Shown here piece by piece: positions 6,774 through 61,855 of a stretch of DNA of 64,000 nt. The notes beneath the pieces were generated by a model. That model saw nothing but the letters and a program-made list of their open reading frames with translations. It was not told where the DNA came from and did no database searches. The number at the start of each line of letters is the position of its first letter. Position 1 is the stretch's first letter. The stretch covers positions 69,750,001 to 69,814,000 of the forward strand of contig OZ287753.1 in the NCBI GenBank assembly GCA_965649765.1. The letters run 5' to 3'. The DNA comes from Bispira polyomma (Eukaryota). The translations under genes and the position numbers were made by a program.

Positions 6774-9700
6774 ATGAAACCAAACCAAAAACACATTATC
6801 CAGTGGAACAATAAGCCAAATTTTGAAGAAATTAAACATTTGATTTCTGATTTTAGTCCATACATTTTAGCTTTGCAGGAAACATATTTTAAAGACAACG
6901 ATAATTACAAATTGGGAGGCTTTGATCACTATTACAAAACTAGTGTTTCAGAGGTTAATGGAAGAGTATTTGAAGGTTGCTCATTATTTGTTAAAAAAGG
7001 TGTGCCACATGAAATAATCTCTTTAACCACACAGTTACAAGCCGTAGCAGTTAAAGTATCTCTACACAAAACAATACCTATATGTTGTATATATATTCCA
7101 CCAAGTTGTACAGTTGCACAGAAAAACTTAGATAATCTAGTCAATGAACTGCCACAACCATTTGTATTAATAGGGGACTTTAATACCCATAATGAGTTGT
7201 GGGGTTCAAATCACTGTGATAGTAGAGGAGAATAGATTGAGCATATATTAGACTCACCTAGTGTTTGTTTACACAATGACTATTCTCCTACATATCTACA
7301 TCCAGCTACAGGATCTTCAACTGCAATAGATTTATCATTATGTTCCAGTTCAATATTCCTTGACTTTACTTGGCAAGTTCACAGTGACCAATGTGGTAGT
7401 GATCATTTCCCAATTTTAATCGATATAGTTAAAAATATACCAAGAGACAATGTACCCCATTGGAATATTAAAAAGGCTTATTGGATAAAATATCAGCTAC
7501 ATTGCTCACTTGAAATTAATAGACATACATTTCAAAATTTGAGTGACAAGTTTCCTGTTTTTATGAATAAATTAAATGACACAGCCACAAAAAGTACACC
7601 TAAAACCTCAGGACAGTCCACTGGTAGTTTTAAACCACGGTTTAATGATGAATGTAAAGCTCGTCAGAAAGCGCTAGATAAATGCCGAATAAATCCAACA
7701 TCCGCAAATATAAATGAATATAGAAACTGCAGGGCTAAGGTTTGGAGTGTAATGAAAGCAGCCAAAAGAAACTCCTGGAAGGAATATATATCAAAACTAA
7801 ATACAAATACTTCAGCCAAAAAGGTATGGGAAATGCTTAAGAAAATAAATGGGAGGCAAAATAACACAACAGTAAGACCTCTAGTAAATACTGATGGAAG
7901 TAAAATAACAGATAGAGGAGATATAGCAAATATGTTGGCAGAAGAAATAAGCAAAAATTCCAGCAGTAAGAATTACTCTGTTAAGTTTCAGAAATATCAG
8001 GAAAAGGCTGAAAAAGAAAAGCTTAATTTTGCATCAAGAAACCATGAAAATTATAACATGAAGTTCAAGATATCAGAATTAATAGATGCATTAAAAAAGT
8101 CTCATGATACAGCCACAGGGCCTGATGAAGTACATTATCAATTACTTAAACATGTACCAAGGGATTCACTTATGGTACTATTAGAAATATTTAATGAAAT
8201 ATGGATAACTGGTGAAATCCCTGAATGCTGGAAAGAAGCAACTATTATACCCATTCCTAAGCCTGGTAAAGACCCACAAAACCTATCTAATTACTGTCCC
8301 ATATCTTTGACGAGCTGCTTGTGCAAGACTATGGAAAGAATGATAAATGCAAGATTGGTTTGGTTTCTTGAAAAAAACAACATTTCAAGTGTACATCAAA
8401 GTGGTTTTAGAAAAGTTCGAACTACAACAGACCAATTAGTTCGACTTGAATCTTTAATTAGAGATTCATTTTTAAAAGGCAACCATGTTGTTTCAGTATT
8501 TTTTTATCTAAAAAAAGCATATGATACTGTTTGGAAATATGGTGTTGCCAGAGATTTGTATAAGGCAGGGCTTCGTGGTAGAATGCCTGTTTTTATTCAG
8601 AATTTTTTATCCAATAGAGTTTTCAAAGTTCGCCTAGGATCAGTTTATTCAGATATGCACAATCAAGAAATGGCTGTTCCTCAAGGAAGTATCCTTGCTG
8701 TTACTTAGTTTATTTTAAAAATCAATAGCATAAGTGATATTATTCCATCCAACTTTGAAAAGTCTCTCTTTGTAGATGACCGTTAAATAACATATAGCTC
8801 AAATAATATGGTCTCTATAGAAAGACAATTAGAGCTATGCCTGAATAAAATTGCAAAATGGGCTGATGAAAATGGTTTTAAATTTTCTAAAAGTAAAACA
8901 GTATGCATGCACTTCTGTAACAAAAGAAAAGTCCATCTAGACCCTACATTGACATTATATGGCACTCAGATACCTGTAGTAACACAAAGAAAGTTTCTTG
9001 GCATTATACTTGATAACAGGTTGAATTTTAAAGCACATATTGACTATGTGTGCAAGAAATGTGACAAAGCAATGAATTTATTAAAAGTAGTCTCAAAAAT
9101 GGATTGGGGTGCGGACAGATGTGTACTACTGAGGATGTATCGATCTTTTGTTAGATCAAGGATGGATTATGGTTGTGCAGTTTTTAGCTCTGCCCGTAAG
9201 TCTTATTTGAGAAAATTGGAACCCATTTAAAACCAGGGCATAAGAATATGCCTAGGAGCCTTCAGGACTTCTCCAATGCAAAGCTTATACGTAGAAGCTA
9301 ATGAACCACCATTATACCTGAGATTTCATAAACTGTGTGTTAAGTATGCAATAAAGTTGAGAAGTAATCCTGAAAATCCAACCTATGAAGTAGTATATAA
9401 CCCTCAGTACATAGATAAGTATGAAAATAAACCATCTGCTATAAGATCATTTGGGCATCGTATTAAGGCAGACTCAGCTGCTGTCTGTCCTCGGTTGGAT
9501 TTAATTCAGACTGTGTCATTGCCAGAAGACCCACCCTGGACTATACAAAAACCACATATTGATTACTACTTGGCACAAAATAGAAAACATATATGAGACG
9601 ATTATTTATTTCAAAGTCTCTTTAGCCAGTTGATCAACTGTTATTCTGCCCACAGGGCAATATATACTGATGGTTCTAAAGATAAAAACAAAGTAGCTGC

Positions 9701-10451
9701 AGCAGCAATATCAAATGGCCTCAGTGCCCAAGTTAGATTACCTGGCAATGCTAGTATATTCACAGCTGAATTGCAGGCTCTGAAAATGGCATTTCACATT
9801 ATTAGAAATTGTGAGGGGTTAAAGTTTATTGTATTCACTGACTCTCTATCTAGTCTGAGAGCCATTGAGGGCAATAACTGTGATCATCCCTATTTTCAGG
9901 ATATTTTAAAGGTTTTTAATCAGTGTTTGTCAGTGAACAAAAAAGTAGTTTTAGCATGGGTTCCTAGTCATGTAGGTATTAAGGGCAATGAAGTGGCAGA
10001 CAAGCTTGCCAAACAAGCATTGAATTTTAACATTATAGACTTGAAAGTCCCCTATACAGACTCTAAAGTTAATGTAAATAGTGTTTTTAAACAAAAGTGG
10101 CAAGCCCAATGGAATGTGTGTCCTGATAACAAACTATTTCAAATAAACCCTACAGTTGGAGATTTTAATTTTTGGACAGGTTTATCTCGTAGGGAAGAAA
10201 TAGTTATTATTCGAGCCCGTATAGGGCAAACCTATTTTACTCACAGCTATCTGTTAAAAGGTGAGGATATGCCCTGGTGCATTCCATGTCATTGTCCCGA
10301 TGCAGTCAGGCATATATTATTAGACTGTATCGACCTACATGACGTACAAGTAAAACATTTTAATAGTAAAAATTTAAAAGAATTGTTATATACAAATGTA
10401 AATAGTGTTTTTAATTATTTAAAAGAAATTTATTTCTTTTATAAATTTTAA
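6774..10451 (+). pseudogene. LINE ORF2: AP endonuclease, reverse transcriptase, RNase H and zinc finger, with 5 premature stops
   Basis: LQET, GDFNTH, SDHFPI (APE); IPKPGK, QSGFRK, PQGS, FVDD (RT); YTDGS, AELQA, TDS, WVPSHVGIKGNEVAD (RNase H); CIPC..HILLDC; stops at 7233, 8706, 8784, 9228 and 9594. Confidence 0.95.
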
Positions 10452-22773: not shown

Positions 22774-23980
22774 ATTTTCTTATATCTTCTACCTTCAGTG
22801 GTTTGTAAATAAGATTTATAGATTCGCCTTTACTATTCTTCAAAATAATAACAAATTATAAATACTTTAGTTGTGTAAGCCTTTGAAGACAAAACATATC
22901 ATCGAATCACTGTAGTACTCTGTTTAGGAATACACATATTGTTTTTGATAACTTCTGTAAAGCAAAACTAGTACATTGTTGTAGTTAATATATTTTTAAT
23001 AAATATGTGTATATCATTCTACACAAATGTTGTACTTTTAATATGAATTTAGAAATAGTGATAATTAAATAAAGCAGTAAACAGTTTTGTGTGGCGTCTT
23101 CTAAAGCACCACATCGCTGAGAGCAAGGTGAAAGGGATAGTCCTACTTTAGCAATGGTTTGTTCATATCTTGCCTTTTGACCAGGTCACACCTACACGTG
23201 CTAGCATCCCCCAACGTGGCAAAACTATAAAAACTGAAAACATGGTAGTTGCGTGTCAAAGTGATGTCATTGCCATAAATCGATTGTGACATTTTTGTGA
23301 CAATGTTGGTACTTATACACACAAAGCGGGGGCAAAAATCGATCACTTTACTGGTAGGATATCCCTACCTACTACTACGTAGATCTACTGTATGCTACTT
23401 ACGGCGATGTTCTGTTGCGTTCTGCAACTAAGTGAAATGTTTTTTTTACTAATACAGACGAGTGAAGACGATATCACTACTTTCTGCTACGTTTTGCTAT
23501 GTTATGTTACGTAGTGCTACTTATACAGACGAGTGGAGATGTTCTCGAGAAACGGAGAGCTCTGCCACAAATATTTTGAACAGTTTGAAACAATTGTGGC
23601 AGCGGACCAAACGGAAACATTTCTGAAATGATATAATCTGTCAAGCAACGTCACGGAACTCACTCAACAGGAATCCTTACTTTGGCATTAATGTCTACTA
23701 CGTTTCAAAACTGTTAAAAACCTCATATACACATAGCTTTAGCTTTCTCGATAAATTGACCACTTCAAATATTCTGTTTAGCACAAACTTTATATAAAAA
23801 AATTGTGAACACTTTGTTCTGAACAGAGGCGCTCCAATCTAATTGTCTATTTGTCTTAGCTTTACATATTATCACTACCTGAACAAAATTGTATTTGCTT
23901 GAACCTTAAAAATGTAGTAAATTGTGCTCATTGAACACAAACACAGTTAATCAAATAAGTGGATGTTTTGGTTTCAGATT

Positions 23981-24068
23981 ATGACTTCTCTTCTCACCAT
24001 CATTGTTTTGTGTCTCTCTGCAAATGGACTAGCAAGGACTTTGATGGCCGATGAGGAGCTACAAAGAG
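23981..24068 (+). CDS. Coding exon 1: signal peptide and start of propeptide
   Basis: Acceptor gtttcag ends at 23977 (implies an upstream UTR exon); ATG at 23981; hydrophobic LLTIIVLCL then GLA|R; donor G|gtaaaa, phase 1. Confidence 0.85.
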
Positions 24069-26714
24069 GTAAAACTTTTTAGTCAGCAAATTGTCCATGT
24101 GCATACAGGAAAACTTTGATATAATGTATTAATTGCTCGGAACAGTATTTTGCGGTTTCTAAGAGTAATGGATAACTAAACGCAAATACACATGTATGAA
24201 TGTAGTTTACTTTATCTAGTGTGACATATTATACTGAGTTATTGAATAAAGATCAGCCACTGTGGCCTAGCGGGATAATTCACTAAGGAATGAAGATGAT
24301 TTGCTTGTCATGCAGCTAGATGGATAGACATAGCTCTTAATTGTAGTGTAAAGATTTAAAGGGACATTTACAAATGACCTTAAGCTTTTGTCTTTAGTAG
24401 TGTACATAAGTGTGCACAAGAGAATAGCTATTGGTCATTTAAAAAAAGAGCTAAAAGATCAAAACTATTAACTGACTACTATTTTTGTCTATTGGGTTTG
24501 ATAATATATTTTCCAAAGCTATATAATAATGTTGATACTGATGCCATGAAGATGACATTGAAAGTGTTCTTTTTCTTCTTTTAGTTCAGACAAGAATTTT
24601 GGATTTGCTTCTTGAGAGGAGGGCTGTTTATAATACTTATGTGGAGTACTTGCTGGAACACAGTGACAATCAAATAGATAAAGCTGTTGCCATTGATCTG
24701 GTATCCCATGTAATCATGAGCGATGTTAATAATGGTGTGAGTCACCACATGTTATTAGATATAATTACATAAAGTAATTTTTTAAAAGTAGATGTTTTTT
24801 GTGCCTTCTTTGTTGGGCTTCCTTTGCGTAATGGTAACATACTCCACTGAATATTGAAATTATGAGATATGGACAGGTGCGTAAACCAGAAGACAGTCTA
24901 TGTAGTGTATGTAAAATACTGGCAGATGAAAAACACTTTGTATTTGACCGTTTACAGTATACTAATATACATACTGGTTTCTTAATAAATTTTAAGGTGG
25001 ATGAACAAGATGTTTGAATAAAATGGAAAGTACTTAAGAACAAAAGAAATGTTTATAACTTTAGTAACTAGTTATTACAAATTTTGAAAGTAAGACAAAA
25101 TGCACAAAAAGGATAAACATTTAAAGTTTCTTGAATAACCAATGGTTTGTAAATTTTAATATTCAAATTACCTACAATAGGAGCGAATATTTCTTTCATG
25201 TCATTAAATAATCTAATTGTGTAAATATGTAACACAAAATCAGTTGTATATTAAGCAACACACTGTTCTGTGTATATTAATTAATGTTTGTATATTTTCA
25301 CTCTCTCATAAGCCATACTTGGCTGGCTGTGTAACAGTTGAGAGTATTATAAAAAATCTGTCTATCTACTCTGCTCCCACATCTGCCCTTGTGGGTTCCA
25401 ATCTCGTATGTATGTCGGAAAGGTGGCATTAGACTTCCTGAAACCATTCTAAGAGTGGTTAAAGTTTTGTCCTAAGCAGTTTCCAGAGCAGACCAACTAC
25501 TTTGTTCTGAGTTTCTTCACCAGTAAACTGCCCATCAAGATATGATTTGTTAAAAGGTCAGTAGGTCTATTGCCAACTTTCTTACATACACACCAGGGCC
25601 AAAACTTGAACTCATGACTGCAGAAGTTGGCGGCAAGTGTAATTCCACTACACCACTGATGCCCCATTGCAATGTGTTTAACAGATTTACATATGAGCAT
25701 AACTTTAAACATATGATATTTTTGCAGCAACTGGGACTGAGTAAATCTGAGATCGCGGATCTTGCATCCAAAGACTTTTTTGTCGGAAAACGCTTTACTG
25801 CAGCGAATGATCGATATATCGTCCAACTGGAATCGGATGAAGGTTTCACTGCAGAAGGAGAGAAACATAATGGATTCCTTATAGTGAAATACTCCAACTC
25901 ACGTAAGTGGCTATCTCTATCATACATATTATGGGAGACTTGAAAGTCCATTTCTTTTTACATAAAATATCTAGTATTGCAATATAACGGAATCTGACAT
26001 GTGATACTTTAAAATAATTTTAAAGGAGCAATTTTTTTCTTTCTGTGCCTTGAGTCTAAATAAATTTTGAAGCCAGCTAAAATGTCACCTTCACCAATAT
26101 AACAGGTATTTTGAATTTGTCCAGAAATTATCAAAATTTATTGTGCAAAGTTTTTTTTAATGAGGGTCAATTTGATACAAGACTGTCTAACAATGCATTG
26201 CTGAGTTGGTTACCATGGTAATGAATGAATTATTCTTAATTATACTCAACTTGGTTTGTTGTGATGCTAGGGGCCGCGGTGGCCTAGTGGTTAGCAAGCA
26301 TTGTGCTTTACAATCACCGGTCTCTCACCTCTGGGCGGCGTGAGTTCGAATCACGTCGATGCCTATGTGGGAAAGGTGATAGTTCCTTACTGTGGGCCGC
26401 TGGTTTTAGTGCAGAACCTTGACCGACTGTATGCAGTGTTTCCTCCAGCGTTTCCAACTACCCGTCCCAATATAACCTACTAAAAGGTACTAGAGTGGAT
26501 GTTAAATATCCAAATTCAAATTCAAATTGTTATGATGCTAATACATTAATTTCGCAAATTCATTTTACTATTTATTAGAAACAACAGCCAGTAATATTAT
26601 GAATGTTTGTGTCTCTTTTTAGTGATGATGGTTGCACACTGTAAAGCTAAAAAAAGTACATGCGAAGACACAACTGATTTGGTCAAGGATATCCTTATAC
26701 ACCAGGGATATTAG
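23981..26714 (+). CDS. Spliced gene, join(23981..24068,24585..24736,25728..25902,26623..26714): 168-aa secreted prepro-profilin-like protein
   Basis: GT-AG introns with matching phases 1, 0, 1 give MTSLLTIIVLCLSANGLARTLMADEELQRVQTRILDLLLERR-AVYNTYVEYLLEHSDNQIDKAVAIDLVSHVIMSDVNNGQLGLSKSEIADLASKDFFVGKRFTAANDRYIVQLESDEGFTAEGEKHNGFLIVKYSNSLMMVAHCKAKKSTCEDTTDLVKDILIHQGY*; the last 126 aa align by eye, end to end, with profilins. Confidence 0.85.
24585..24736 (+). CDS. Coding exon 2: end of propeptide (RR) and profilin N-terminus
   Basis: Polypyrimidine acceptor ttcttcttttag; 152 nt; donor GGT|gtgagt, phase 0. Confidence 0.85.
24800..25120 (+). mobile_element. Decayed LINE ORF2 C-terminal zinc-finger fragment in intron 2
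   Basis: IEIMRYGQVRKPEDSLCSVCKILADEKHFVFD resembles the CxxC..DExHF motif at LINE 3' ends. Confidence 0.6.
25728..25902 (+). CDS. Coding exon 3: profilin core
   Basis: Acceptor atttttgcag; 175 nt; donor C|gtaagt, phase 1; overlaps track ORF 25614..25943. Confidence 0.9.
26270..26526 (+). mobile_element. tRNA-derived SINE in intron 3
   Basis: A box tggcctagtgg, B box gttcgaatc, (aaattc)n tail, 14-bp TSD ttgtt(g/a)tgatgcta; highly similar to the copy at 59447-59701. Confidence 0.92.
26623..26714 (+). CDS. Coding exon 4: profilin C-terminal strand and helix, stop codon
   Basis: Acceptor gtctctttttag; reads LMMVAHCKAKKSTCEDTTDLVKDILIHQGY-TAG. Confidence 0.85.
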
Positions 26715-26872
26715 ACACATAGAAATCTGAGACAGAGAAAACACTTTATTTTTACGTTAAGATTTCATGCTAATATTAAATGTTAGAGTAAAATATAACA
26801 ATTAAGATAATAAGTGACTCTATTTTGCAGTAATAATTTAAATCTAATAGTTTGTGCTCAGAATTGTTACAT

Positions 26873-26913
26873 AATAAAGTGTCAATTAAGTCACAATAGA
26901 ATTAATTAATAAA
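26873..26913 (+). terminator. Candidate polyadenylation signals of the profilin-like gene
   Basis: AATAAA at 26873 and 26908, 160-200 nt after the stop; AT-rich background weakens the call. Confidence 0.5.
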
Positions 26914-29900
26914 ATGGTATCCCATGTTGACAAGTTCAAACAATTTGAAAGTGATTTGGCTCCAAAATTGATGGAAGACCTATCAGGTCAAGCCAATAAA
27001 GGAATGTAAATCATGATAGGAAGATACGATCCATACAATAATGCATCTATGATTGTCACAATCTTTAGTTCTGATCTTGAAACTCCATTTTTTTTGTTAT
27101 ACCTAGTGAAAGCTATGTAAGTGATCAGCTTGAATGTGATGGGGAATGTATAGGAAATATTTTTTTTTACAGTTTTTTTATCTTGTAAAACTTTTGTAGG
27201 ATGATTAATAAAATACTCATCCACATCCACTTCCAACCAGATTTTATTCACATTTAGGTGTACACAGTGTAACCCTTGACACTCACGTTGAGCTGGAACT
27301 GATAAATAATCTGACATGTTACATCCAGTTATGGTACATGTTATGCCAAGCTGAGATAATGCCCTAATCTTTAGTTTTGTTTAGTTTGGGAGAAAATGAC
27401 AATAGTTGGACAAGGTTTTCCATTGTGCAAACTACTAGTCTTCAGCATGTCTATTGACAATTTTTCACTTACATGCCAGGTTAGAGATTTGAACCCATGA
27501 TGGGAGAGGTTCCAGGCAAGTGTGCAAGAACTACTCTGAGGCCCCCATGATCCAAAGAAAAATGGCTAGATGGGATAGAGCTTTCACCCTAGTTTTCAAT
27601 ACTTCATGTTTTCGTGATACACAAACACAAAATACAACTTTCACCTCCTCATATGACTAAATTTATATCTTCCAGATGTTTGAAGTAGATGCCACCCAGG
27701 CCATTTACTTCGGTGAAAAGAGGAATGTACAGACAATATCTCTTTTTCACAGTATGTAAAACTTTTGTATGATCGTAAATATTTGGATTATAATGAACTG
27801 CACTCGGTAAGCAAGGACCATATTTATCCACATTCATATCCAATTAGACCTAATTGTCATTTACAGTTAGATGTATATTAGCTTTTTTCACTTTCTTTGA
27901 ACTGGAACTGATAAATAAACTTCGTATTATGCAGGTTCTGCCAATCTGACATCTTGAACTGATAAATATTCTTACTAGTTAAATTGAGTACTGTACATGT
28001 TCATTATATTTGAGACGCTGTCCCATTTTTATCTGAAATCTGTGCATAGTACGTTTTTCAGATGATGCTTTACCCCGGTTTTAGGCCTTGCAACAGCATT
28101 GTTACCAACCACTCTTGCAGATTTTATGTTGATTTTCGCTCATAGACATCATTAGCGCCAAGAATGGTGAAGCATTTTTTTTTTTCAAAACTGTTGGCTA
28201 ATTACTTCACAATTCAAAATAGTTGACTTGACTTAACCCTGACACACTAATTACTACATCGATACAAGAGAAGACTGTTCACTTTTAATTTCTTCTATTT
28301 TAGCACATATCCAAAACTACAATCTATTATGCTATCTAACTTAATTTCCTGGTGACAATGTAGGACTTGGTCATTGATACACAAAAAATATGTTAATTGC
28401 TTTTGATTTTGTCTATTTTCACTACTCCACATGCTTTACTAATGATAGTGATGGTTGTTGAGATCAGCTTTTTCCTTCGTTTGTGCACTTTGCTGTGGAA
28501 GTTTTATTGGGCAATTCAGGGACTGTCCCCAATATTGGTTCAGTCTCTAGTATATCAAACTTACTTAATAGATATCAGCACAAATAAAAAGTGTTGAATT
28601 TATTTTATTACACCCTTAAATTACCCTCAAATGATTGTGACCCCTTTATCATTGCTTCAATGTGCCATTTATTTGTTTAAACCCTGACAACCTTGTCTGC
28701 TGGCTAGCAGTTAACATATACTTCTTTTTGACAATGCCATGTCTGCTGGCCAGCAGTCAACTGTATAAAATATTACTGCATAGCTCCTTCCACACACGGG
28801 ATCTATGTGGTACACTGCTTTTCACATAAATATATTTTTTTTTCATTTGTTATGTAACCAGTTGTTCATAAATGTAATTTGTGATGTCATTATAGTGTAT
28901 CCAAGTATTGTTCCCCCATATAGTGCAATTACTCTCCATTGATGTTGAAGGGGTTAATGTAAAATAGCTACTGAGTACCACTGCTGAAATGCACCCTTTA
29001 TTTGTTTGTTTTTAAAAATGGCAACTCAGTACCTTAACTAACGACTTTGTCTCAATAAAATAAGTAAAATATTGTTACCAAATGAACTTCAATATTATTG
29101 CTCTGCCAATGCCTCCCCCTTCATTCACATTTTCTTTATTCTATACTGCCAGGAGTTAGCTTTTGATTTCTGTCTGTTGGTTTTATTGTTGCATCTGAGA
29201 TATGTGACGATTTCATTGGTCTTGTGGCTGAAGGATTTCACTAGTCCTTATAGGGTCCCACGTTCAACTTTTATTATATTTGTATATGGTTTTCCATGGT
29301 CTCGTAGTTAAAGGCTTAATCTAGTCCTCTGAGGGTGCCTGGTTCCGTCTCATTATATACATGTGTGGTATCCCATGGTCTATTGGTTAAGGGTTCAACT
29401 CCCAAAAAATCACACAGCCATACTTTGCTTTATATGTACTTCAAATTATAAATAGATTTGGTGCGGGCTTACTTCTGAAATTTCCACACCATTTATTCCA
29501 TGCTACTGTTATAAAAAAAGGTTAGTGTCTTGTATGAACCATATGTTAGCAAACCTGTATTTTATTGACTTAACTTTTATATTTTGATCAGTTTCATAGT
29601 TGTAAAGCTACTCTGTGCCAGTAATAAATTTGGCTATGCTTAATCATTACAAAAAAAATTCTTCCATATTCCACATGTAAGAGGTAGTATATAACATAGG
29701 GATAATGCAGTTACTGGTTTAGTGCTACATGTAGATGTAATTCAATGAGTGTATTCCCCCCCCCCCCCTTTACTTACAAGTAAGTGCTTAAAGGATTGTT
29801 GTGTGACACCTTTTCTGGTATTGAAGTAACACTTTGCATTAATTTAAATAAGTACAATGTGAAAGAGCAAGCACTTTGTTTTTAAGATATCTGTCAGTCT

Positions 29901-59829: not shown

Positions 59830-61855
59830 GTGTCACACGTTGCCAAAGCCGGGGCAGACAATAGTTGTCAAAAAGCCCCTCCCCCAAAAGAGGGGAGCTC
59901 TTTGTCCATGAATGTAAAATCAAGTAACCTGGCACAAGGTGTCAACAACCAAAGTGAATTCCAATTACCCATTCACAATAGATTTGCATTATTAGACTCT
60001 CCTAGTGTACAGGCAGTAGAAACTATTGTTTCTGCCCCCGTGGCTGATAGCAAATCTTGTCAGAAGCTTCCAAATAAGCAAAAACGTACAAGAAACACTC
60101 AAGTGAATACTTGCGACAACAAATATGCATTGGAAGTGTACAAATGTCCCGATAAACAACAGTGTTTAAATAATGCTAAAGACTGTGATACCTACAAGTT
60201 GTGGGATATTCAAAATAACGGAAAATTTGGTTTTATTCCACTTAGCTCGTGGGGTGGACCCATTCAAAATGAATCACATACTAAGGTTACTATGGATGTG
60301 TTTGCCTTACATAAGCGACTAAAACAAGATGGGTGCCCAAACTATAGGGGATTACAAATACCCGTGATTACACAGTTGAATGCCCCTAGAGTGGGAGAAA
60401 TACTTGACTGGGTATTGGGATTGGGAACTCCCTTTACTTATAAATTATGGTTTCCCCCTTGACTGTGACGAGGAACACGTGTTTCACTCTGACCTCGATA
60501 ACCATTCTTCAGCTACCCAGTATCCAGATCATGTGACTTATTATTTAAAAGAGGAATGTAAATTTGGAGCAATGTATGGCCCATTTGCAATTCCCCCTAT
60601 TGATAAAGTACATACTTCTCCTTTCATGACCAGGGACAGGTCGAGCTCTATTAACCAACGAGTTATCATTGACTTAAGTTGGCCTCTCGGACATTCGGTT
60701 AATGCAGCTGTGTGTCCTACCACGTACGTAGGAAAGGAGTTTATACTCACCTATCCTTTGATTGATACAATCACTGAGCAGGCACTTGTCATGGGAAAAG
60801 GTTCTTTAATCTTCAAAGCTGATATAAGTCGTGCTTTTAGACACGTGACTATAGATCCGAAAGATATTAATTTGCTGGGACTGTACCGGGATGGTTATTA
60901 CATCGACGGCTCGCTCCCGTTCGGTTATAAGCATGGTTCGGCCATTTTCCAGCGAATTTCAGATGGAATAAGGTATATAATGTAAGGTGAAGGTCATCAG
61001 ATCACGAACTACATCGACGATCTCCTTTGCTGCTCAGTACCTACAAAAATATATATAAAACCTACCATAGATTGCAGGCTCTATTAACCGAACTCGGTCT
61101 GACTTTGAGTAAGAACAAACTGGTTCCCCCTGCTACACGGGTTACCTGTCTGGGTATTGTCATAGACACTGTGGAGTTCACCACCTCCATACCAGAGCAA
61201 AAATTACTAAATATCCACACCACTTGTGGCAAACAAAAAATTCTGTACTAAACTTGAACTGCAGTGTTTACTAGGTTCTTTGTTATGTATTTCAAAATGT
61301 GTGAAATACTCCAGATTCTTCCTCAATAGGATGCTCCACCTCCTCAGAAGCAACCATAAGAATAAATCAATCAAAATTACCACTGAATTCATCAAAGATC
61401 TCAATTGGTTTAGAACCTTTCTTAGCAAATTCAATGGGGTGTCCTTTTTTCAACACAAACCCATCACTGCTATTATAGAGTTAGATGCTTGCCTTACTGG
61501 TATGGGAGGTGTTTATGACAATCAAGTATACACCCTATCTGTACCTCTTGAAATGCAACACCTGAATAATGCTTCCTTAGAAATGTTTAACATATTGGTA
61601 GCTCTCAGGTTGTGGGGTGTGCAATGGAGAGGTCGTGCAATACTGATAAAGTGTGACAACCAGGCTGTGGTTAGTGTTCTTACACATGGCAGAACACGAG
61701 ATGAGACTCTAGCTTTATATTCTAGAAATATTTTTATGACAGCCAGCCAATATGATGTGCAGTTAAAAGTAATACATATCTTAGGTGAAGACAACTCTAC
61801 TGCTGATCTACTGTCACGCTGGACCAACTCTTCAAAATTATATTCGTTTATATGA
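59830..61855 (+). pseudogene. Reverse transcriptase and RNase H of the YR retrotransposon (frameshifted, with stops)
   Basis: SPFMTR..RVIIDLSWP, KADISRAFR, LPFG, NYIDD (~61008), ELDACLTGMG, LEMFN, CDN and NSTADLLSR. Confidence 0.93.

Follow-up and report, generated by a model that had tools for sequence, protein, structure and literature searches.

A putative secreted protein family with a profilin-like domain and hyper-divergent exons in the annelid Bispira polyomma

Introduction

Profilins are textbook cytosolic proteins. Their fold has a central antiparallel sheet against which the N- and C-terminal helices pack, and they bind actin and PIP2. They also bind poly-L-proline through a set of aromatic residues, which comprises an N-terminal Trp and Tyr, a Trp close to position 30 and a C-terminal Tyr. 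The gene described here is located in a 64,000-nucleotide stretch of Bispira polyomma DNA (assembly GCA_965649765.1, contig OZ287753.1, positions 69,750,001 to 69,814,000 of the forward strand), called "the window" below. It has four exons and encodes a precursor of 168 residues, which starts with a signal-like segment and appears to carry a profilin-like domain.

Two kinds of described systems are close to this locus. The first consists of profilins that act outside the cell producing them. Both MiPFN3, an effector of the root-knot nematode, and the profilin-like protein of Toxoplasma do so without a signal peptide (PMC5871015). In a limited literature search, no member of the profilin family bearing a classical signal peptide was encountered. 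The second kind is represented by the genes of prepro-toxins and defence peptides, such as the conotoxin superfamilies, in which a signal and a pro-region with a dibasic end precede the mature peptide. In conotoxin genes, the introns are reported to be conserved and the mature-peptide exon to carry many more point changes, together with trinucleotide indels (PMC3862624).

The window gene has features of both. It shares with MiPFN3 and the Toxoplasma protein a probable membership of the profilin family and a proposed action at the interface between organisms. However, those two are recognisable actin-binding profilins, whereas the window gene has a classical signal-like start and an apparently degenerate ligand site. 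The predicted arrangement of signal, pro-segment and mature part, with a dibasic pair at the end of the pro-segment, resembles that of the prepro-toxin genes. The conserved introns and the concentration of point changes and three-nucleotide indels in the coding exons are also reported for conotoxin genes. Unlike a conotoxin, the mature part is not a short disulfide-rich peptide but a predicted alpha/beta domain of about 126 residues with two cysteines. There are two intact copies rather than a large superfamily.

The firmest new result is the existence of an intact pair of paralogues having hyper-divergent exons and conserved introns. Together with decayed relics, the two copies probably constitute a lineage-restricted family, which was derived from a profilin gene and moved to the secretory pathway. 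There is roughly an even chance that the product is a secreted prepro-protein, the profilin-derived domain of which serves as an extracellular binding module at a fast-changing interface.

The gene and its paralogue

The four exons of the window gene (Table 1) were read out of the sequence and translated individually. Their summed length of 507 nucleotides corresponds to 168 codons and a stop codon, with no internal stops. All introns have GT...AG borders. The donor sites read GTAAAA, GTGAGT and GTAAGT, a pyrimidine tract precedes each acceptor, and the introns are in phases 1, 0 and 1. This structure is exactly that proposed in a first-pass annotation of the window, which had described four exons with canonical splice sites and matching phases encoding 168 amino acids. 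All motifs quoted at that time were also found, namely GLA/R (the slash marks the candidate cleavage site), LLERR, AVYNTYVEYLL, IDKAVAID, LSKSEIADLA, DRYIV, GFLIVKYSNS together with LMMVAHC, and DILIHQGY.

Upon searching the genome of the same animal exon by exon, a paralogue was found on a different chromosome (locus L016, at G000:C3:71.26 Mb on the minus strand). Its exons, situated at 8116-8029, 6333-6173, 5726-5543 and 4701-4610 of L016, have the same phases and GT-AG sites as those of the window gene and form an intact frame of 174 codons. The lengths of the corresponding exons differ by 0, 9, 9 and 0 nucleotides, all multiples of three. The four-exon model is more than a chance open reading frame, because the paralogue retains the four exons, the phases, the GT-AG sites and the intact frame. 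In the preferred interpretation, the window locus would be a real protein-coding gene spliced as predicted.

The window locus and L016 can be aligned over at least 6 kb, including introns and flanks. The paralogue is therefore a segmental duplicate rather than a retrocopy.

Decayed copies are present in addition to the intact pair, with all pieces lying within C3 86.26-86.28 Mb. One of them is an isolated exon 3, still open and flanked by its intron sequences (L017 6662-6492, minus strand; G000:C3:86284491-86284661). It is 43-45% identical to exon 3 of the window gene over the entire exon, and the intron flanks are common to both. About 24 kb away there are a partial exon-2-like piece (L030 3992-3918, minus strand) and a piece resembling the 3' untranslated region (1601-1441, minus strand). 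No further exons beyond these two pieces came to light when the surroundings of the relic exon 3 were scanned from about -34 to +39 kb. The pieces are not in gene order, showing that at least two copies have decayed. Within the family, it is the relic exon 3 that resembles profilin most. This may reflect slow neutral drift of the relic, as opposed to the live copies, which have been driven apart.

Divergence of exons and introns

The introns of the two intact copies are similar (identities are given in Table 1), with a Jukes-Cantor distance of 0.12-0.14. The 5' flank is 87.9% identical (distance 0.13) and the 3' flank 92.5% identical (distance 0.08). The exons, in contrast, are only 77%, 81%, 64% and 70% identical from exon 1 to exon 4, corresponding to distances of 0.22-0.49. 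Nevertheless, both frames are open and every splice site is kept. The nonsynonymous and synonymous distances, obtained by the Nei-Gojobori procedure and summed per exon, are dN = 0.415 and dS = 0.372. The proportion of nonsynonymous differences is 0.319 compared to an intron p-distance of 0.116, which is about a three-fold excess (Fisher p ~1e-19). The three codon positions differ at frequencies of 0.33, 0.31 and 0.30, respectively, each well above the 0.116 of the introns.

If the two copies were decaying neutrally, their exons would resemble their introns, and under purifying selection the exons would be more alike than the introns. The exons have diverged at two to four times the rate of the introns with the frames still open, which points to diversifying selection acting on the coding sequence at the protein level, a pattern known for toxin and defence genes. 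Purifying selection, which the first-pass annotation had suggested, does not agree with a coding sequence that changes faster than the neutral level given by the introns.

The signal-like segment and the pro-segment

Exon 1 encodes a nine-residue hydrophobic core, LLTIIVLCL, with a mean Kyte-Doolittle value of 3.36. The core of the paralogue is LVIFAVLCL and has a mean of 3.49. Small residues at positions -3 and -1 mark two candidate cleavage sites in the window gene, LSA/N and GLA/R, and the site VLA/R in the paralogue. A rule-based check for signal peptides, defined by a hydrophobic core and small residues at -3 and -1, thus finds both elements. There is no second membrane-like segment, as no other stretch reaches a mean Kyte-Doolittle value of 0.9 over 19 residues.

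The pro-segment contains the motif TRILDLLL, which is invariant between the copies and is the best-conserved motif of the entire protein. It ends in a dibasic pair, RR in the window gene and KR at the matching place in the paralogue. Under the weak alignment of exon 2, the KR pair is positioned one residue further upstream than RR. The signal-like segment and the pro-segment together account for 42 residues and are followed by 126 residues. Two cysteines occur in this mature part, Cys145 and Cys152 in precursor numbering (C-x6-C), and both are present in the paralogue.

The prepro layout recognised in the first-pass annotation, consisting of a signal-like start, a pro-segment and a dibasic pair, is therefore present in the window gene and conserved in the paralogue. 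It had also been proposed that RR occupies the place of the initiator Met of profilins. This holds in so far as the residue following RR falls on position 1 of the profilin profile, but the exon-2 alignment on which the placement depends is weak.

Relationship to profilins

The relic exon 3 was compared to 24,736 Pfam families. The sole match was PF00235 Profilin, with an E value of 0.028 and a score of 15 bits, in which residues 6-54 of the exon were aligned to profile positions 40-93. Upon comparing an alignment of the three exon-3 sequences to 60 profilins with hhalign, a P value of 0.0021 was found over 52 columns, and the exon was placed onto positions 39-94 of the canonical profilin of this genome. 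When 118 profilins were used, the P value was 7.4e-4 and the score exceeded those of all 300 column shuffles. The exon-4 alignment gave P values of 0.025 and, with the 118 profilins, 0.021. It was placed onto the last 18 residues of profilin, positions 112-129, including the very last residue. The placements of exons 3 and 4 adjoin each other. Their diagonals differ by 59 in the run with 118 profilins, which is the length of exon 3 plus the split codon, and only about 7% of the shuffles fall near any given diagonal.

With a HMMER profile built from the same 118 profilins, exons 2, 3 and 4 fall onto positions 5-26, 51-92 and 102-126. These placements adjoin each other in the right order and have shuffle P values of 0.18, 0.002 and 0.03, respectively. 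The 126-residue length of the domain fits profilin without net gaps. Intron 2 (phase 0) is situated between profile positions 37 and 38, which is both the position and the phase of intron 1 in a PFN4-like gene of this genome. Intron 3 presumably matches intron 2 of vertebrate PFN1/2.

The mature part thus has in common with the Profilin family a domain of about 126 residues, a colinear similarity that starts in mid-domain and continues to the last residue, and the motifs G-x-(K/R)-Y, an IVK strand and a C-terminal D-x-L-I-x-x-G-Y. It differs from the family in falling below the Pfam thresholds, in having the tryptophans of the poly-proline site apparently replaced and in evolving faster than its own introns. 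On these sequence comparisons, remote homology to profilin is quite likely. The support for profilin ancestry is moderate and falls short of Pfam-level membership. The full-length alignment to profilins claimed in the first-pass annotation is retained for exons 3 and 4 (P of 0.0021 and 0.025), whereas the exon-2 part of it is not significant.

The residues expected to bind poly-L-proline were examined using the hidden Markov model alignment. Under the weak alignment of exon 2, Trp3 is replaced by Tyr in the window gene and by Cys in the paralogue, and Trp30 by Ile and Ala, respectively. Tyr6 corresponds to Tyr in the window gene and Phe in the paralogue, and the C-terminal Tyr is kept in the window gene and is Leu in the paralogue. 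As far as the weak exon-2 alignment can be followed, the classical poly-proline ligand site appears not to be maintained.

Other profilin-family loci of the same genome (L001-L010, L020) provide a comparison. They include a canonical single-exon gene scoring 111 bits. In addition, there are four divergent single-exon genes (L002, L003, L004, L007), the multi-exon PFN4-like gene on C1 (L020), which shares one intron position and phase with the window gene, and two more spliced candidates (L009, L010). No signal-like N-terminus was found in any of these loci where the start is readable. Among the profilin loci examined, the 42 residues of signal-like segment and pro-segment occur only in the window gene family. 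A profilin 78% identical to the canonical one of this genome is encoded on a 628 kb contig, ctg30534l, of a public "metagenome" assembly (ENA ERZ22147071; L024), which probably comes from a related animal.

Proposed maturation and function

The 168-residue precursor would enter the endoplasmic reticulum (ER) by means of its N-terminal signal peptide, with cleavage likeliest after Ala18 or, alternatively, after Ala14. The short, acidic and helix-prone pro-segment with the invariant TRILDLLL would follow, ending in the dibasic RR or KR. A convertase of the furin/PC type could then cut at the dibasic pair and release the profilin-like domain of about 126 residues, possibly stapled by a disulfide between the conserved Cys145 and Cys152. 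Outside the cell, this domain might have a defence, toxin-like or recognition role. An extracellular binding role rather than regulation of actin is suggested because the tryptophans appear to have been lost and the change is faster than neutral. At somewhat less than even chances, it is tentatively proposed that an annelid lineage has converted a profilin gene into a prepro-protein secreted by the classical pathway, with the domain diversifying faster than neutral.

Contrary evidence and alternative explanations

A number of observations weigh against the interpretation as a secreted profilin-derived protein, and many of them concern its ancestry. The profilin assignment of the first-pass annotation was not recovered when the exons of the window gene were run singly against Pfam, as none of them matched any family, PF00235 included, at E<=10. 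The single exons of the paralogue had no match either. A genome-wide scan with PF00235 yielded ten matches at about eight other loci, with the window locus absent. The similarity of exon 2 to profilin is not significant, and deeper profiles place its best local match elsewhere. When about 37 kb were scanned in six frames with the 118-profilin profile, the exons of the window gene were at background and only the relic exon stood out. Scored singly with this profile, exons 2, 3 and 4 contribute 0.0 + 4.6 + 2.2 bits. Even the relic exon has only the 15 bits mentioned above compared to the PF00235 gathering cut-off of 25 bits, and the whole protein is unlikely to score at or above that value.

Searches of large collections gave a similar picture. 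The exon-3 profile and the relic exon did not find a profilin in sequence searches of the PDB, exon 3 had no usable match in the ESM Atlas, and a phmmer comparison of the exons to individual profilins gave nothing useful. A word-indexed search of 5.8 billion proteins with the exon-3 open reading frame (region 39-96) returned no candidates, and HMMER with the exon-3 profile found no true homologue among 1.84 billion representatives. Five matches obtained in the latter search were rejected as compositional false positives, being long proteins with 3-13 short matching stretches each. The canonical profilin of this genome found only two relatives in these libraries. The blank searches fit either fast evolution or a sparse sampling of animals.

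These negative results would be expected if the gene belonged to a secreted, fast-evolving orphan family whose likeness to profilin was due to chance or to convergence of an alpha/beta pattern. Such an origin is unlikely, as Profilin is the only one of the Pfam families to match the relic exon, and does so at the expected part of the profile. Furthermore, exon 4 is placed independently onto the profilin C-terminus adjoining exon 3, the 126 residues fit without net gaps, and an intron position and phase are common to a profilin-family gene of the same genome.

The divergence data are also open to other readings. The argument for positive selection depends on the introns being a neutral yardstick. 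The overall dN/dS of the pair is 1.12, which in this pairwise Nei-Gojobori comparison is not significantly above 1 (p 0.64). In the same comparison of two sequences, exon 2 has a ratio of 2.4 and exons 3-4 have one of 0.8. At conserved codons, 8 of the 37 four-fold sites differ, somewhat more than the intron level. The four-fold sites and the dN/dS of about 1.1 make a raised mutation level specific to the exons a possible alternative cause of the contrast. Moreover, the three sequence runs that contain this stretch are all genomic DNA contigs that cross the exon-intron borders without interruption, and there is no RNA run among them.

Both copies might instead be duplicates that are dying or not transcribed, with frames open by chance and an exon-intron contrast that has a cause unrelated to selection on a protein. 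This would be compatible with the DNA-only runs, with the surroundings rich in transposable elements, with the relic fragments of more copies and with the dN/dS close to 1. However, it seems improbable. Neutral decay predicts an exon divergence of about 12%, like that of the introns, and not one two to four times faster. Even with a nonsynonymous difference of about 32%, neither the 168-codon nor the 174-codon frame contains a stop, the indels are multiples of three and the splice sites are kept. The hydrophobicity of exon 1, the dibasic pair, TRILDLLL and both cysteines are conserved as well. It is still less probable that the product is a divergent intracellular profilin, with exon 1 either unused or preceded by an upstream coding exon. 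The acceptor-like sequence tttggtttcag immediately 5' of the ATG in both copies would allow such an exon, and the known released profilins have no signal peptides (PMC5871015). Nevertheless, exon 1 keeps its ATG, length, phase-1 donor and nine-residue core while diverging at 23% of its bases. There is an in-frame stop 33 nucleotides upstream of the ATG in the window gene, and use of the single other in-frame ATG upstream, at 23963, would only lengthen the signal-like segment.

Features of the locus and its surroundings

The coordinates of the gene and of the adjoining features are collected in Table 1.

Table 1. Features of the window gene and its immediate surroundings (positions are those of the window)
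Feature	Position	Strand	Description
High-copy repeat	23755..23930	.	About 50 nt 5' of the ATG, at both paralogous loci; non-coding; 203 first-look genome-wide candidates at 75-81% identity
Exon 1	23981..24068	+	ATG and signal-like segment (codons 1-18, 23981-24034), then the first part of the charged pro-segment; phase-1 end at GTAAAA; the paralogue keeps the ATG, hydrophobic core, 88 nt length and donor
Intron 1	24069..24584	+	Phase 1; 88.6% identity with intron 1 of the paralogue
Exon 2	24585..24736	+	Remainder of the pro-segment (invariant TRILDLLL; RR codons 24617-24622)
Exon 2, domain part	from 24623	+	Would form the N-terminal third of the domain; matched weakly to profilin positions 5-26/29, non-significant with a deeper profile
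Intron 2	24737..25727	+	Phase 0, at profilin positions 37/38; alignable part 87.6% identical to the paralogue
Exon 3	25728..25902	+	Putative central part of the domain, on profilin positions ~39-95 (hhalign, hidden Markov model shuffle test, Pfam match of the relic exon)
Intron 3	25903..26622	+	Phase 1; 88.8% identity with the paralogue outside the SINE-like insertion
Exon 4	26623..26714	+	Putative C-terminal part of the domain, C-x6-C, end ...LIHQGY, stop codon (hhalign onto the last 18 profilin positions)
Probable 3' untranslated region	26715..27041	+	Highest conservation between the copies (92.5%); ATTAAA at 26775, AATAAA at 26873
nt, nucleotides; SINE, short interspersed element.

Two of the introns contain repeats. 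A high-copy repeat insertion at about 24773-25354 in intron 2 is missing from the paralogue. Intron 3 carries a SINE-like element with a tRNA-like head at 26270-26520, which has a word depth in the millions in the DNA contigs. Copies that are 91-93% identical to it are found in L016 (2541-2787 and 3265-3513), L026 and L028. ARAGORN called no tRNA in the element. Open reading frames with reverse transcriptase and RNase H domains are located at 7539-10451 and 61226-61855 of the window, consistent with the earlier description of a neighbourhood dominated by transposable elements.

An allelic contig, seen in three of the three DNA runs, differs from the window by a C>T change at 26589 and by a one-nucleotide deletion (26616) in the run of T residues preceding the acceptor of exon 4. 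No differences were found within the exons.

Implications

The family was missed by Pfam and by two multi-billion-protein searches, and its link to profilin became visible only through a relic exon that has changed more slowly. If the interpretation as a secreted profilin-derived protein is correct, it would provide the first case of a profilin-fold family made for the ER-Golgi route and serving as an extracellular binding scaffold. It would follow that the profilin fold lends itself to recruitment as a secreted scaffold. The two genes would then represent a compact system in which a housekeeping fold has been re-targeted and subsequently subjected to diversifying selection.

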